A stretch of 64,000 bases of DNA, taken from IMG/VR virus record IMGVR_UViG_3300046171_000231, positions 62,001-126,000 of that record. One strand, 5' to 3'. The notes beneath the pieces are model-generated. The model did no database searches, had not been told where the DNA came from, and saw nothing but the letters and a program-made list of their open reading frames with translations. This document shows positions 37,180 through 51,721 of this stretch, piece after piece (position 1 is the first letter of the stretch; each line of letters opens with the position of its first letter). The translations under genes were made by a program, and so were the position numbers.

Positions 37180-37817
37180 TAATATAAAACGGTTGGTTTC
37201 CAGAAATTACGATTTGGTTGTATCACTTCAATTGTAGGATATGAAGTCAAAGATTGATCTGTACCATTAGAACTGGTTTGATAAAACAAAGGGTCATCAA
37301 ATGCATAGACATTATAGTATCTTTGTATTTCAGCGAAACCAATATCTTGATGTTGTGCAGTATCAAAAGATTGATGTGCAATCTTGCTACAGAGAGAAAC
37401 ATATTCCTCATCTAAGTATAGCACAGAATGAGCACTCAGCATATTATATATTCTCAAAAGACCACCGTTCAATTCTTCATATTGAACGCAAGGACCAGAG
37501 TGAGAATTCATCCTACCCCAAGATGAGATGCCAAGATAAACTGCGTCAGAGTCATCAGGTACATCAATAATAGTTCTAAAGTTTTTTGTTTTGCAATCAT
37601 CTTCAAATATAATAAAAGGTGGTTCTACTTCGTTCAATGCTTTGTAGTGAGAGTAAGAACAACCTGCTAATGGTCTGTCTGGTGTATACTCACCATCTAT
37701 ACGAATGATATTTTCAAATCCACATTCGTCTAATACATCTACAATACTATTCTTTTTCTCAACATCTTGTTGAAGATTGATATAGACAGCAGGTATTTCT
37801 CTAAGATCTAAGTTCAT
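37179..37817 (-). CDS. GT25-like glycosyltransferase
   Basis: VYINL...GCSYSH...IIFEDD. Confidence 0.6.
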   Translation of the reverse strand: MNLDLREIPAVYINLQQDVEKKNSIVDVLDECGFENIIRIDGEYTPDRPLAGCSYSHYKALNEVEPPFIIFEDDCKTKNFRTIIDVPDDSDAVYLGISSWGRMNSHSGPCVQYEELNGGLLRIYNMLSAHSVLYLDEEYVSLCSKIAHQSFDTAQHQDIGFAEIQRYYNVYAFDDPLFYQTSSNGTDQSLTSYPTIEVIQPNRNFWKPTVLY

Positions 37818-38497
37818 TGTGGTCTTTCTTCAATGCAATAATTTTAGCATCATAAGGATACTCGGAGTTATACATTTGCTCCTCTGCAAAACAATATGAT
37901 GGTGTCAATGATTTAGTTGGTGGATTATCTATCAGGTAACGATTCATCTGTGATTCATCGTGCCATAATGCAATAACATCATTCTCTAAATCTTTTGTGA
38001 CTCTATCGGCAAGTATCTCTGCCATTTCTAAAAATCTTTTTGTTGAACCACCATTGAATCCACCTGCATAATATAACTCACCTTCTTCACCTGGTGGTAC
38101 ATATGCAAGTGACTTTGGATTACGGTCATATGTTCTCTGCTCTTTTGGATAGAATGATTGATATGGATGCATAGTTGCAACTAAATCATCTAATACTTCA
38201 TCACCAACCTTATCTACGATTCCCATATCTACATCAAAGTAGTAACAGTAATCAAACTGTGAAATATAATCTTTCTCTTTTACAAAGTAATTGTATCTCT
38301 TTGAGTGTTGGCATTGGCCAAGGTTCGTGGTCAATTTGAGATACCTTAATATTATCTGATGTTTCTACATCGTGTTCAGTAAATAATAAACCTTGTATCT
38401 CGTGACCATTGAGAAACTTCTCTTCAATATTATCATACAATCTTTCTACAAATTGTATGTACTTATTAGTTGCAATAGTCAGAATAAGAATTTTCAT
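37801..38497 (-). CDS. glycosyltransferase family 6, ABO-like (1-nt insertion at ~38301)
   Basis: IATNKY, WPMPTL|KRY, DVD, YYAGGFNGG, WHDESQMNRY. Confidence 0.88.
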
Positions 38498-39360
38498 CTT
38501 AATATATCTAATAAAGTTTTGACAGAGCATTCAAAGGATAGATTGTCCTTAATAAATGCTTTTGGATCATATTCGTCTAGTGTAGCATAAAATTTAGAAA
38601 ATGTCACATTCAGTTCATCTATGTTAAAAAATACTTCTCCACATCTCTCATCCCAATAAGGTATCGATGTTGCAGGAACTCTGTATGCTTCTCCTTGGTC
38701 TAACCATTCTTTAATATCCCAAGCAATAATCGGAACTCCCATTGACATAATCTCTTGAACTGCAATACCCTGACTTTCTGTACCATTAATAAGGAAACAG
38801 AACTTTGCTTGATTAACTAAATCCTTAAAACCATCTTCACCATATCCACCATACTCTACCATTTTATATGTAAGATTTTTACTATCTAAAAATTGCTTGA
38901 CTGTATCTAGTTCTTTCTGCTCTCTTCTCTTGAAATATATCAGACAATCATATGTAATATCTCTTTCATTATTAAATGTCTCAATACCAACTGGCCAGAC
39001 TGATAACTTATTCTCTGGTAAATTAAATTTATTGATAAACTTATCTTTGACCCATTGAGATGGTGCAATCATCTTTTTGTAATAATCCTGATGTTCGATT
39101 AGAAACTGTCCATAGGTATCAAACAACCAAACCTGTGGTCCAATAATACAAGTATCAAGTTCTATTTTAGAATGTTTTTCGTGTGCAATATCATTATATT
39201 GTAATAGAAAATTATGTTCGTACTTCTCTTCATTGATAGCATAATCGATCTTCTCTTGGTCTAAACTCATCAATAGATTTTTTACAACCTTATGAGGACC
39301 ATTCATTGTTTGAGTATGACCCCAATATGATTCAGAATAATATAAGTTTATCATAACCAA
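38494..39360 (-). CDS. GT-B (family 4-like) glycosyltransferase
   Basis: APSQWVK, ESQGIAVQEIMSMGVPII. Confidence 0.7.
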   Translation of the reverse strand: MVMINLYYSESYWGHTQTMNGPHKVVKNLLMSLDQEKIDYAINEEKYEHNFLLQYNDIAHEKHSKIELDTCIIGPQVWLFDTYGQFLIEHQDYYKKMIAPSQWVKDKFINKFNLPENKLSVWPVGIETFNNERDITYDCLIYFKRREQKELDTVKQFLDSKNLTYKMVEYGGYGEDGFKDLVNQAKFCFLINGTESQGIAVQEIMSMGVPIIAWDIKEWLDQGEAYRVPATSIPYWDERCGEVFFNIDELNVTFSKFYATLDEYDPKAFIKDNLSFECSVKTLLDILR

Positions 39361-39771
39361 GTAGTTTGTTTTAGCATTTCTTCTGGAAGTTTATCAGTCC
39401 AAATGTAATCAGTATGTTTATTATCTATCTTTGGTTCAAACATCTTTTTGACAGGAACAATATGTAAGAGTGTAGGTGTATGAGTTGCCCTTGCATCTGG
39501 AACATCTGGAAAAATATAATTAGAATATCCGATAATTTTAAATTCAGAAAAACTTTGACCTATCTCTTGCATCATAACTCTTTCTGGCTAACTCTGCCAT
39601 TGTTTCTTTATATCTTAATCTACCACCAACTACCCAGTATACATCTTTAACTGGTTCTTCTTTCCTTTTAATTAATAGATATTTTTTCTCAGCAAAAATT
39701 AAAAAGTCTGCACAGAAAACTGGCATCGTTTTTATTATCTTTTGATACTCTTCTTCTGGTATAAAAGTCAT
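39351..39771 (-). CDS. GDP-mannose mannosyl hydrolase-like Nudix protein (1-nt insertion at ~39586)
   Basis: LLIKRKEEPVK..W..GGRL...ET..E.A.R...QEIG...TH. Confidence 0.75.
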
Positions 39772-49752: not shown

Positions 49753-49769
49753 AATCTATTTCACTCCTT

Positions 49770-50719
49770 TTATATAGAACGTAAATTAGACTCGTTATTT
49801 TTCATCCACTCATAGGTAGATTCAAGTCCTTCTCGTAAACTAATCTTCGGTTCCCATCCCAAAGATTTCATTTTATCTACATTCAAAACCTTTCTTGGAG
49901 TTCCATTTGGTTTTGATGTATCCCATTCATAATCGTTCTTATATCCAGTAACTTCAACTATCATCTCTGCAAGTTCTTTGATTGTTACATCTTCTCCTGT
50001 TCCAATATTAATTATCTCTTCACTGTCATATCTTTCCATACAAACTAATAATGCTGCTGCTAAATCATCAACGTGTAGAAATTCTCTTTTTGCAGAACCA
50101 TCACCCCATAGTTTTACAACCCAATGCTTACTCTTTTCTAATGAACCGTGAAACTTTGAAAGTAAAGATGGTAGAACGTGTCCATAATTATGATCAAAAT
50201 TATCATTCGGTCCGTATAAATTAGTCGGCATTACTGCGATTCGCATTCAAACCATACTGTTTACGATATGCCTGACACATTTTGATACCTGCAATTTTAG
50301 CGATTGCATATGCATCATTGCTTGGTTCTAGATAACCTGATAGTAATTGGTCTTCTGTGATTGGTTGCTTTGCTAACTTTGGATAAATGCAAGAAGAACC
50401 TAGAAATAGTAACTTTCGAACACCAACCATTGCTGCACAACTGATAACATTTGATTGAATCATCAGATTCTCATATATGAAATCAGCAGGATAATCAGCG
50501 TTACCACCAATACCACCTACCTTTGCTGCTGCAAGAAAGACATACTCTGGTTGTTCCATCATAAAGAACATCTTAACATCTTTCTGGTCAGTCAAATCAC
50601 ATTGAAAACGACTCACAGGTTATGATGTTTGTAAAACCTTGAGATTCTAAATGACGAACGATTGCAGAACCAACTAGTCCGTTATGTCCTGCAACAAATA
50701 TTTTTGAATCACTGCCCAT
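49770..50719 (-). CDS. fcl: GDP-L-fucose synthase (insertions at ~50618 and ~50240)
   Basis: [55 protein letters not shown]. Confidence 0.9.
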
Positions 50720-51721
50720 AGATACACATATCCTCAACTAATTGTTTAAATGTTGTTTTAGGTTCCCAACCTAGTTTTTCTTTTGCCTTTGTTGCATCAC
50801 CAAGTAAACTTTCAACCTCTGATGGTCGGAAGTATTTCTCATTTACTGCAACAATCGTTCTCTTTGTAGTCTTATCAATTCCGATTTCATCTAGACCTTT
50901 ACCCATCCATTCAATATTAAATCCAAATATAGGTGCTGCTTCTTCTACAAAATCACGAACAGAGTGTTGTTCACCAGTAGCAATCACATAATCATCTGGT
51001 TTTTCCTCTTGCATCATCAACCACATTGCTTCAACATAATCCTTTGCATGACCCCAATCTCTCTTTGCATCAAGATTACCAAGATACAAAATATTTTGAA
51101 GACCAACAGATATTCTTGAAAGACCCTTGTGTAATCTTACGAGTAACAAATGTCTCGCCTCTTCTAGGAGACTCGTGATTGAATAGAATACCAGAACTGC
51201 AATGCATATTATATGCTTCACGATAGTTCTTGATTATCCAATAACCATAGAGTTTCGCAACTCCATATGGTGAACGAGGGATGAAATGGTGTTGTCTCTG
51301 TCTGTGGATGTTCTTGTGCTAATCCATAGAGTTCTGATGTAGATGCCTGATAGATGCGTACATCGTCTTGCATTCCAAGTATTCTGACTGCTTCAAGAAT
51401 ACGAAGTGTTCCCATCGCATCAACCATTCCAGTATATTCTGGCAACTCAAAGGAAACTTTAACGTGACTTTGAGCTGCAAGATTATAAATTTCGTGTGGT
51501 TTAACCTTCTGTATAATATGAATGATACTACCAGAATCGGTCATATCACCATAATGAAGTTTAATCTTACTGTAGAAAGGGTCAATACGATGTGTATTAA
51601 TAAGAGAACTTCTTCTTACAATACCGTGTACATCATACCCTTTAGACAACAAAAACTCGGCAAGATAAGAACCATCTTGCCCAGTTATGCCTGTTATTAA
51701 TGCTGTTCGAGCGTATTTCAT
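50709..51721 (-). CDS. gmd: GDP-mannose 4,6-dehydratase (insertions at ~51279 and ~51125)
   Basis: [51 protein letters not shown]. Confidence 0.95.

Follow-up and report, generated by a model that had tools for sequence, protein, structure and literature searches.

Glycosyltransferases of family 6 (GT6) make the human ABO and alpha-Gal antigens, and the vertebrate enzymes have been suggested to descend from the DXD-type GT6 clade of phages and Parachlamydia. Blood-group mimics are also made by bacterial O-antigen clusters, among them those of Helicobacter mustelae and of Escherichia coli O86, in which a GT11 enzyme (WbnK) and a GT6 enzyme (WbnI) stand together with gmd/fcl/gmm. The closest described phage system is the 'LPS' (lipopolysaccharide) cluster of the T4-like cyanomyovirus P-SSM2, found also in P-SSM5, for which Sullivan et al. 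2005 put forward an alteration of the host surface (PMC1079782), a hypothesis repeated for the phages S-SCSM1 and S-SCSM2R (PMC9602691, PMC12801897). A GT6 gene is annotated in P-SSM2, as had been stated in an earlier reading of the present DNA made without database searches (the sequence-only reading), and it has been discussed in the literature (PMC3516806, PMC3961637). Thiyagarajan et al. 2012 placed it in their GT6 clade 1, defined by a DXD motif and a minimal catalytic domain, together with marine metagenome homologues and the GT6 of Parachlamydia acanthamoebae (PaGT6); the latter, a metal-dependent GalNAc transferase acting on the H antigen, is the sole assayed member of the clade. Here we describe an island of this type on the minus strand, at 35504-52091, of a stretch of 64,000 nucleotides (the window) that corresponds to bases 62001-126000 of the 235,761-base virus record IMGVR_UViG_3300046171_000231 (G+C 34.9%). 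Islands of this kind have been known since 2005 and their GT6 clade was described between 2010 and 2014. We lean towards reading the present one as a P-SSM2-like glycan island, probably intact in nature, that would build a tip resembling the blood-group A antigen.

A nucleotide comparison with phage records yielded no alignment over more than 5% of the region. Only short matches of 73-87% identity were found, and the virus was identified through protein-level searches. The GT6 protein is 85% identical to that of the Prochlorococcus phages P-SSM2 and P-SSM5. Besides psbA and tail fibres the genome contains T4-like structural genes; the genes of the record lie mostly on the minus strand, and its large ORFs have their PHROG matches among tail-fibre and structural families of cyanomyoviruses. 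The island is collinear with the P-SSM2 'LPS' cluster PSSM2_257-271, thirteen of whose fifteen proteins were matched with 53-85% amino acid identity. Both share the order Gmd, Fcl-like, SDR, GT2, GT2, GT1, methyltransferase-like, GT11, GT4-like, GT6, GT25-like, epimerase and GT25. By its predicted gene content and order we identify it as the 'LPS / cell-surface glycan' island of a P-SSM2-like T4-type cyanomyovirus. PSSM2_262 (PhyH) and PSSM2_267 are missing from the window, which has in addition a mannose-6-phosphate isomerase cupin, a GDP-mannose 3,5-epimerase (GME), a Gmm-like Nudix hydrolase, a second methyltransferase and a four-gene heptose module. S-SCSM1 and S-SCSM2R are likewise large cyanomyoviruses with Gmd, Fcl, GME, a GDP-mannose Nudix hydrolase, a mannose-6-phosphate isomerase, GT11, GT25 and many other glycosyltransferases. 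However, their gene order and content differ from those of the window and no GT6 is mentioned in their descriptions (PMC9602691, PMC12801897).

The genes on which the predicted A-like tip depends are the following.

50709-51721, minus strand: Gmd, GDP-mannose 4,6-dehydratase (TIGR01472, pieces of 235 and 194 bits)
49770-50719, minus strand: Fcl, GDP-L-fucose synthase (NF047922, pieces of 197 and 202 bits)
39768-40568, minus strand: predicted GT11 alpha-1,2-fucosyltransferase (PF01531 E 1e-26; 59% identity to PSSM2_265)
37801-38497, minus strand: GT6 of the DXD minimal-domain clade (C-terminal piece matches PF03414, E 6e-35)
37179-37817, minus strand: GT25-like glycosyltransferase (profile-profile match to GT25; EDDC at 37593-37604)
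36283-37179, minus strand: UDP-hexose/UDP-HexNAc 4-epimerase, GalE/WbgU/WbpP-like (PDB 4ZRM E 1.6e-47; WbgU and WbpP about 1e-39)
35504-36286, minus strand: GT25 glycosyltransferase of the LOS (lipooligosaccharide) beta-galactosyltransferase family (PF01755 E 1.6e-9; 81% identity to PSSM2_271)

Pfam and NCBIfam matches thus recovered, all on the minus strand, the Gmd, Fcl, GT11 and GT6 genes that the sequence-only reading had listed. The two Gmd pieces total 429 bits against an equivalog cut-off of 415 for TIGR01472, and the gene aligned to PSSM2_257 in three frames, with extra bases at 51281 and 51127. The match of the GT11 protein to PF01531 spans positions 33-294 of a profile of 298 and scores 94 bits (cut-off 23.9), and the protein carries HIRRTDY (40119-40139), VFSDDPKW (40011-40034) and ANSSFSWWGAWL (39870-39905), so that what we take to be the three family motifs, HxRRxD, SDD..W and SxSxFxWW, are all present. 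The protein at 37179-37817 matched nothing in Pfam or NCBIfam. In an hhalign comparison with the neighbouring GT25 family it gave 97.8% probability and E 1.3e-12, with the EDDC motif included in the alignment (BLASTP E 3e-6), and this link makes the plural 'GT25 enzymes' of the sequence-only reading a fair one, although both genes lie just outside the interval 37801-51721 to which it had assigned them. The GalE-like epimerase scored 150 bits with TIGR01179, under the cut-off; it could be a source of UDP-Gal or UDP-GalNAc.

The GT6 reading is split by an extra base, considered below, yet its C-terminal piece reached 121 bits against a PF03414 cut-off of 25 and passes the curated threshold. A 99%-identical intact copy from another contig (L005:87-779) scored 133 bits over profile positions 81-313. 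The DVD, YYAGGF and WHDES motifs previously noted were located at 38227-38235, 38056-38073 and 37951-37965, followed by ALKKDH..LR at 37804-37836. The DXD, the catalytic Glu of WHDES and the C-terminal Lys, a residue in contact with the diphosphate, are invariant or nearly so among 71 clade members. As in clade 1, the window enzyme has 231 residues, no BHB or stem domain, a DVD, an AGG loop, WHDES and Ala at the position designated A7. The Parachlamydiaceae enzymes have HPG and YFAGG where the phage clade has HPY and YYAGG. In phmmer searches against the PDB the window enzyme matched BoGT6a of Bacteroides ovatus with E 4e-30 and the human GTA/GTB with about 1e-28. An AF2 model of the intact 99%-identical ortholog, rather than of the broken reading in the window, was built from a 60-sequence alignment and had a pLDDT of 96.2 and a pTM of 0.92 (a model from a 7-sequence alignment, with pLDDT 58, was discarded). 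Foldseek superposed it on BoGT6a with a TM score of 0.94 and a root-mean-square deviation of 1.6 Å, on GTA/GTB with 0.85-0.92 and on alpha3GalT with 0.90. The window enzyme therefore shares with BoGT6a (PDB 4AYJ, 4CJ8) and GTA/GTB the fold and the acceptor His, Thr, Tyr, Trp and Glu. BoGT6a differs in being NXN-type (NAN in place of the DVD found here), in its independence of metal and in a C-terminal membrane-binding domain, and GTA/GTB in being type II membrane proteins.

Residue roles at acceptor positions A1, A2 and A7 and in the donor loop were assigned from the published analysis of BoGT6a (PMC3516806). In that work the residues A155-G-G-L158 were shown by mutagenesis to be critical for the use of UDP-GalNAc over UDP-Gal, and alpha3GalT engineered to AGGL acquired GalNAc transferase activity (PMC3516806). 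The donor loop of the window enzyme, YYAGGF, is identical to that of BoGT6a, YYAGGL, over YYAGG and belongs to the same AGG/LGG type as the YYLGG of GTA, and the earlier suggestion that AGG favours GalNAc is in this way backed by experiment on a relative. A1 is His, against Gln in alpha3GalT, and A7 is Ala, a residue shared with GTA, against Trp in alpha3GalT. It is these two positions that are tied to the accommodation of a 2'-fucose, which the Trp of alpha3GalT blocks, and all the characterised prokaryotic GT6 enzymes described there require a fucosylated acceptor (PMC3516806). The conserved acceptor Thr, Tyr, Trp and Glu are kept, as are the C-terminal Lys, His and Arg. Both BoGT6a and the DXD-type Parachlamydia enzyme transfer GalNAc to H-type acceptors. 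From these residues the window GT6 is predicted to be an alpha-1,3-GalNAc transferase.

With a threshold of E 1e-10, 745 protein clusters match the GT6; among the 120 listed, a length of 231 residues is nearly universal. The closest bacterial relatives, 35-47% identical, are proteins of Chlamydiota, Dependentiae and others; 76 out of 80 are of the DXD type, and the statement that most bacterial GT6 enzymes have NXN fails for this group. Two short contigs binned in Verrucomicrobiales and Weeksellaceae metagenome-assembled genomes (L090, NYWG01000258.1; L091, CAZJXE010000345.1) encode GT6 enzymes 71-95% identical to that of the phage and are probably mis-binned cyanophage DNA. Six cyanophage contigs (L021, L042, L044, L047, L073, L074) have a second GT6 copy, the paralogues being 33-38% identical. 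A second phage GT6 type, S-CAM9-like (L082-L084), shows HHPCH and Y(W/Y)QGC instead of HPY and YYAGG, a change of motif that suggests a different donor or acceptor.

We surveyed the neighbourhood of GT6 in 80 IMG/VR loci, with counts made over 63 related loci or, for GT11, over the 54 that have enough flanking sequence. Three neighbours proved nearly constant: the GT25-like gene (62 of 63 loci), the GalE-like epimerase (58/63) and GT25 (56/63). In 45 of 54 loci (83%) a GT11 gene precedes GT6 in the same orientation, and Fcl and Gmd were seen in 31 and 22 loci, respectively, counts that are limited by flank length. Since the gene order is shared with PSSM2_257-271 and recurs in dozens of IMG/VR contigs, the grouping is not due to chance. 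The cyanophage GT6, with its 745 clusters and its occurrence in seawater runs of 12 studies, is abundant; it is under purifying selection and placed in a conserved four-gene Gal/GalNAc module that is usually coupled to a fucose module.

This distribution bears on what the GT6 acceptor might be. The enzyme could be active and yet not be an H-dependent A-synthase, transferring alpha-GalNAc or alpha-Gal onto an unfucosylated or otherwise different beta-Gal/GalNAc acceptor that would be supplied by the co-conserved GT25-like, GalE-like and GT25 genes; GT11 would then fucosylate elsewhere and the glycan would not be blood-group-like. GT11 is indeed a less constant neighbour than those three, and the A2 residue of the clade, Tyr, recalls the Trp of alpha3GalT that contacts the reducing-end sugar of the acceptor. 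On the other side stand the A1 His and A7 Ala described above, the dependence of characterised prokaryotic relatives on fucosylated acceptors, and the linkage of GT6 to GT11, which is found in most phage loci and independently in host genomes. We regard this alternative as unlikely and continue to favour an A-like tip.

Several observations nevertheless weigh against an H-dependent GT6 and a working fucose pathway. Nine of the 54 loci have no GT11, Gmd or Fcl within about 10 kb of GT6, which makes the fucose module frequent rather than obligatory. In one of them (L016) the upstream cassette consists instead of an aldolase, a nucleotidyltransferase, a HAD protein, two GT2, a GT47 and methyltransferases, and the GT6 motifs of such loci are identical. 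A covariation test found the acceptor residues of GT6 essentially unchanged in the GT11-less loci. A2 is Tyr in the window enzyme and in 67 of the 71 clade members; elsewhere it is Gly (BoGT6a, GTA, Parachlamydiaceae), Ser (GTB) or Trp (alpha3GalT), and it is Gly or Ser in every characterised H-dependent GT6. The Fcl pieces total about 398 bits against an equivalog cut-off of 500, and the scores of the heptose module described below are all under the NCBIfam equivalog cut-offs. Finally, the papers accessible to us describe neither an activity measurement nor an analysis of the glycan for a phage GT6 or GT11.

Linkage of the two genes also occurs in cellular genomes. GT6 was found in 12 of 401 sampled cyanobacterial genomes, eleven of them of 1.6-2.2 Mb, and the six loci examined had 31-34% G+C, values that are Prochlorococcus-like. 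These enzymes are of the NXN type and only 29-39% identical to the phage protein. In four out of ten genomes GT6 lies within 5 kb of GT11, and in one (L171, G363:C31:243000-260000) a tight GT11-Gmd-Fcl-GT6 operon occupies positions 5316-9117 among housekeeping genes, with a YhdP-like gene on one side and surE, dnaJ and uvrC on the other. The cellular GT11-GT6 linkage is an independent support for the coupling of GT6 to fucosylation. Further cyanobacterial neighbourhoods with an NXN-type GT6 and GT11 were seen in L175, G014:C16, and G291:C9 and C3.

The remaining genes of the island are given below. The GME and the Nudix hydrolase are split in the window and are described through intact copies in a sister assembly, IMGVR_UViG_3300046170_000353 (contigs L006 and L085).

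51753-52091, minus strand: stand-alone mannose-6-phosphate isomerase cupin, directly upstream of Gmd (PF01050 E 1.8e-51; C-terminal part of TIGR01479 E 8.5e-54)
48703-49752, minus strand: GDP-mannose 3,5-epimerase, GME, downstream of Fcl (intact sister copy L085:4147-5193 matches Arabidopsis GME 2C59, E 7e-89)
47858-48718, minus strand: extended-SDR nucleotide-sugar epimerase/reductase, PSSM2_259-like (PF01370 E 1.6e-19; 61% identity to PSSM2_259)
47089-47865, minus strand: GT2 glycosyltransferase (PF00535 E 1e-19; 75% identity to PSSM2_260)
46466-47092, minus strand: methyltransferase (Methyltransf_24), not in P-SSM2 (PF13578 E 4.8e-13)
45567-46469, minus strand: GT2 glycosyltransferase (PF00535 E 1e-7; 56% identity to PSSM2_261)
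44479-45580, minus strand: GT4/GT1-like glycosyltransferase (PF13692 E 5.6e-7; two frames against PSSM2_263)
43851-44486, minus strand: SAM-dependent methyltransferase, PSSM2_264-like (PF13489 and PF13649, E 1e-8)
40561-43854, minus strand: four genes that look like a heptose-activation module, between GT11 and the PSSM2_264-like methyltransferase, absent from P-SSM2
42748-43854, minus strand: SDR of this module
41801-42748, minus strand: HddA-like GHMP kinase of this module
41301-41804, minus strand: GmhA-like SIS isomerase of this module
40561-41337, minus strand: HAD phosphatase fused to an RfaE-domain-II-like nucleotidyltransferase, of this module
39351-39777, minus strand: Nudix hydrolase, GDP-mannose mannosyl hydrolase (Gmm)-like, between GT11 and the GT4-like gene (via intact copy L006:8527-8952, PF00293 23.3 bits with cut-off 21.1, NF011963 E 5e-8)
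38494-39360, minus strand: GT4-like glycosyltransferase, PSSM2_266-like (weak PF13692, PF13439 and PF00534; 53% identity to PSSM2_266)

In this set the mannose-6-phosphate isomerase cupin and GME, neither of them in the P-SSM2 cluster, flank Gmd and Fcl. The heptose module was recognised through NF049969 (E 3.7e-27), TIGR00441 (E 3e-12), TIGR02199 (E 1.7e-15) and Pfam matches; a similar module is present in about 9 of 54 related loci. Overall the island encodes eight soluble glycosyltransferases (GT11, GT6, GT25, GT25-like, two GT4-like and two GT2) and two methyltransferases. Scans for tRNAs and Rfam families gave nothing within it.

These genes can be arranged into a putative pathway. The mannose-6-phosphate isomerase cupin would feed the GDP-mannose pool, from which Gmd and Fcl would produce GDP-L-fucose and GME would produce GDP-L-galactose, with the Gmm-like Nudix hydrolase trimming the pool, and the GmhA/HddA/HAD-nucleotidyltransferase set would activate heptose. 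A GT25-type enzyme may then lay down beta-galactose, GT11 would place alpha-1,2-fucose on it, and the metal-dependent DXD-type GT6 would add alpha-1,3-GalNAc, taking UDP-GalNAc from the GalE-like epimerase. A GalNAc-alpha1,3(Fuc-alpha1,2)Gal tip is plausible as the outcome. The heptose, L-galactose, GT2, GT4 and methyltransferase genes indicate a product larger than the H/A trisaccharide, so the A-like tip would sit on a larger glycan, probably also with heptose, L-galactose and methyl groups.

Bacterial O-antigen clusters of the O86 type resemble the island in bringing together GDP-fucose genes, a Gmm Nudix hydrolase, GT11 and GT6. They differ in that the GT6 of O86 is NXN-type and Gal-transferring rather than DXD, and in that they have their own Wzx and Wzy and depend on WecA and WaaL, whereas the island has no membrane component. 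No Pfam match to Wzx, Wzy, WaaL/ligase or a priming transferase was found among the island proteins; no flippase, ABC exporter or membrane protein is encoded, and, one out-of-frame artefact apart, none of the island proteins contains a 19-residue stretch with a hydrophobicity above 1.5. The island is accordingly unlike a Wzx/Wzy-type O-antigen cluster, in which flippase, polymerase and lipid-carrier link are encoded together. The lack of export machinery implies that the glycan would be built on host lipid-linked intermediates or on cytoplasmic acceptors such as virion proteins. Glycosylation of virion proteins in the cytoplasm, as practised by chloroviruses and some mycobacteriophages, would concern the carrier and not the epitope. 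Chloroviruses also combine virus-encoded Gmd/GMER with methylated, fucose-containing capsid glycans, and a tail-fibre-rich region lies beside the island, whose glycosyltransferases are all soluble. Analogous clusters occur in host genomes, where they presumably serve surface glycans, and the standing hypothesis for P-SSM2 is an alteration of the host surface (PMC1079782). Expression signals point, though weakly, in the same direction. The best promoter-like sites before the island are sigma-70-like (51756-51728 and 52560-52533, both 11/12), a consensus whose matches barely exceed chance (115 observed against 101 expected), and the T4-type late motif TATAAATA is absent between 33036 and 59069. 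Together they lean weakly towards an early, host-directed expression. Virion proteins in place of host LPS as the carrier we consider rather unlikely, if a possibility to be kept in mind. A late-promoter-like TATAAATA site was seen at 32990-32997.

Nine insertions of one or two bases split six genes of the island, namely Gmd, Fcl, GME, the GT4-like gene, the Nudix hydrolase and GT6. By position they are as follows.

38299-38302, minus-strand gene: GT6, extra base within AAAGAGA, inside the donor-binding loop
39584 (39584-6), minus-strand gene: Nudix hydrolase
45464, minus-strand gene: GT4/GT1-like glycosyltransferase
48926, minus-strand gene: GME, one base
49453-4, minus-strand gene: GME, two bases
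~50241-6, minus-strand gene: Fcl
50618, minus-strand gene: Fcl
51127, minus-strand gene: Gmd
51281, minus-strand gene: Gmd

Such breaks are widespread in this genome. When the P-SSM2 ORFs were compared with it, 19 frame changes were counted in about 105 kb of alignable coding sequence, and they fall in genes such as psbA (window 32034), the terminase large subunit (G000 188670-190317), a helicase, gp7 (six times, G000 212025-223094) and a 2,500-residue structural protein. In this assembly roughly every 5 kb of conserved coding DNA has one frame-breaking insertion, and the insertions are mostly of one base both here and in the sister assembly. The latter is 98.5-99.2% identical over 26 kb and lacks seven of the nine island breaks (39584, 45464, 48926, 49453-4, 50618, 51127 and 51281) as well as that of psbA at 32034, and it bears private insertions of its own. 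Substitutions between the two comprise 72 synonymous and 8 non-synonymous changes, 70 of 82 being at third codon positions (in GT11, 11 synonymous and none non-synonymous). Given this synonymous excess, window and sister represent true strains that are distinct and subject to purifying selection. In both assemblies the base calls can be trusted and the indel calls cannot, and the apparent pseudogenes of the record should not be taken at face value.

Reads from elsewhere gave a direct view of the GT6 break. Between 62 and 76% of sampled words of 35400-41399 were found in 17 seawater or viral metagenome runs, which belong to 11 of the 12 studies in which any of these words occur, and short-read contigs from four runs (X1, X2, X4 and X6) of four independent studies were compared over that segment. 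These contigs were shorter than the window at two places only, by a single base each, 38299-38303 and 39584-39586, and the two are exactly the GT6 and Nudix breaks. The Nudix-site deletion accounts for all the depth, X4 included, and the GT6-site deletion for the whole depth of X1 and X2 and for practically the whole of that of X6. At the GT6 break relatives read CTN-AAA-AGA or CTN-AAG-AGA (Leu-Lys-Arg), and because both forms are present in the same runs the AAAGAGA of the window gives the impression of two synonymous alleles run together. Of 70 complete GT6 genes from IMG/VR contigs, 69 are unbroken, the exception being the sister contig. Searches with identical flanks placed the intact 24-mer in one GOS contig, one JGI contig and L007, and the frameshifted 25-mer in the sister contig only and in no short-read or Sanger contig. 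The sequence-only reading was to be given up if the GT6 frameshift were real; on the evidence of the short-read contigs, the IMG/VR genes and the 24-mer, the break is very probably an assembly artefact.

There is, however, a contrary view of these breaks, in which GT6 and Fcl are truly frameshifted in the lineage of this strain and the fucose/A-like branch is dead here and intact in relatives. The GT6 insertion and the Fcl break at ~50241-6 are common to the window and the sister contigs, all other breaks being private to one assembly. As the two assemblies differ by 0.7-1.5% and represent distinct strains, a lineage-specific loss of GT6 and Fcl is possible, and both shared breaks hit the same proposed pathway. 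In X4 the GT6-site deletion makes up about 59 of 78-122 depth units, so that part of the depth is without it, and the Gmd, Fcl and GME region lies outside the segment covered by the short-read comparison. The Fcl site has GCGAATCGC in the window and GCGATTCGC in the sister, with one base fewer in all relatives; a pattern search in IMG/VR for an intact form of this lineage-specific Fcl returned the sister contig only. The assemblies thus disagree at the extra base itself (A against T), which fits independent miscalls at a difficult site. Set beside this, the insertions in psbA, terminase and gp7, the contig depth of X1, X2 and X6, the merged Lys codons and the restriction of the 25-mer to one contig make a true loss of function very improbable. 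Most or all of the nine breaks are probably insertion errors of an indel-prone assembly, the shared Fcl break less surely so than the others, and the island is probably intact in nature. A homopolymer cause was rejected, most breaks being outside long runs. Nor was a methylated-GATC miscall at the Fcl site (for which the true sequence would be GCGATCGC) supported, given that 446 GATC sites are called in the assembly and that CGATCG is absent here and in P-SSM2.

The abundance of GT6, its coupling to fucosylation and the host operons make a concrete and testable case for A/H-like epitopes borne by picocyanobacteria of the ocean, by their viruses or by both. A bolder extension would make A/H/B-type glycan tips a shared currency of the arms race between Prochlorococcus and its cyanophages. 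Abundant P-SSM2-like myoviruses carry the DXD module of GT6, GT25-like, GalE-like and GT25 genes, usually with GT11 and GDP-fucose genes, and a minority of small, low-G+C Prochlorococcus-like genomes hold non-orthologous NXN-type GT11-Gmd-Fcl-GT6 operons. If this were true, the phage island would mimic, mask or rewrite the host epitope or decorate the virion, giving control of adsorption, superinfection or grazing. We hold this extension to be doubtful, more so than either alternative considered above for the acceptor or the carrier.

Some features of the window lie outside the island. A long run of tail-fibre-like and structural ORFs of up to 1,271 residues occupies positions 2900-30100, on the same strand as the island. 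A PhotoRC-II RNA motif (RF01717, 62.8 bits) was found at 32844-32943 on the minus strand, upstream of psbA. In both this genome and P-SSM2 the palindromes CGCG, GCGC and CGATCG do not occur and CCGG occurs at most once, against about 170-210 occurrences per 4-mer and about 20 of CGATCG expected from base composition; GGATCC, expected 22 times, is absent here and present 14 times in P-SSM2. This depletion looks like a strong avoidance of restriction sites.

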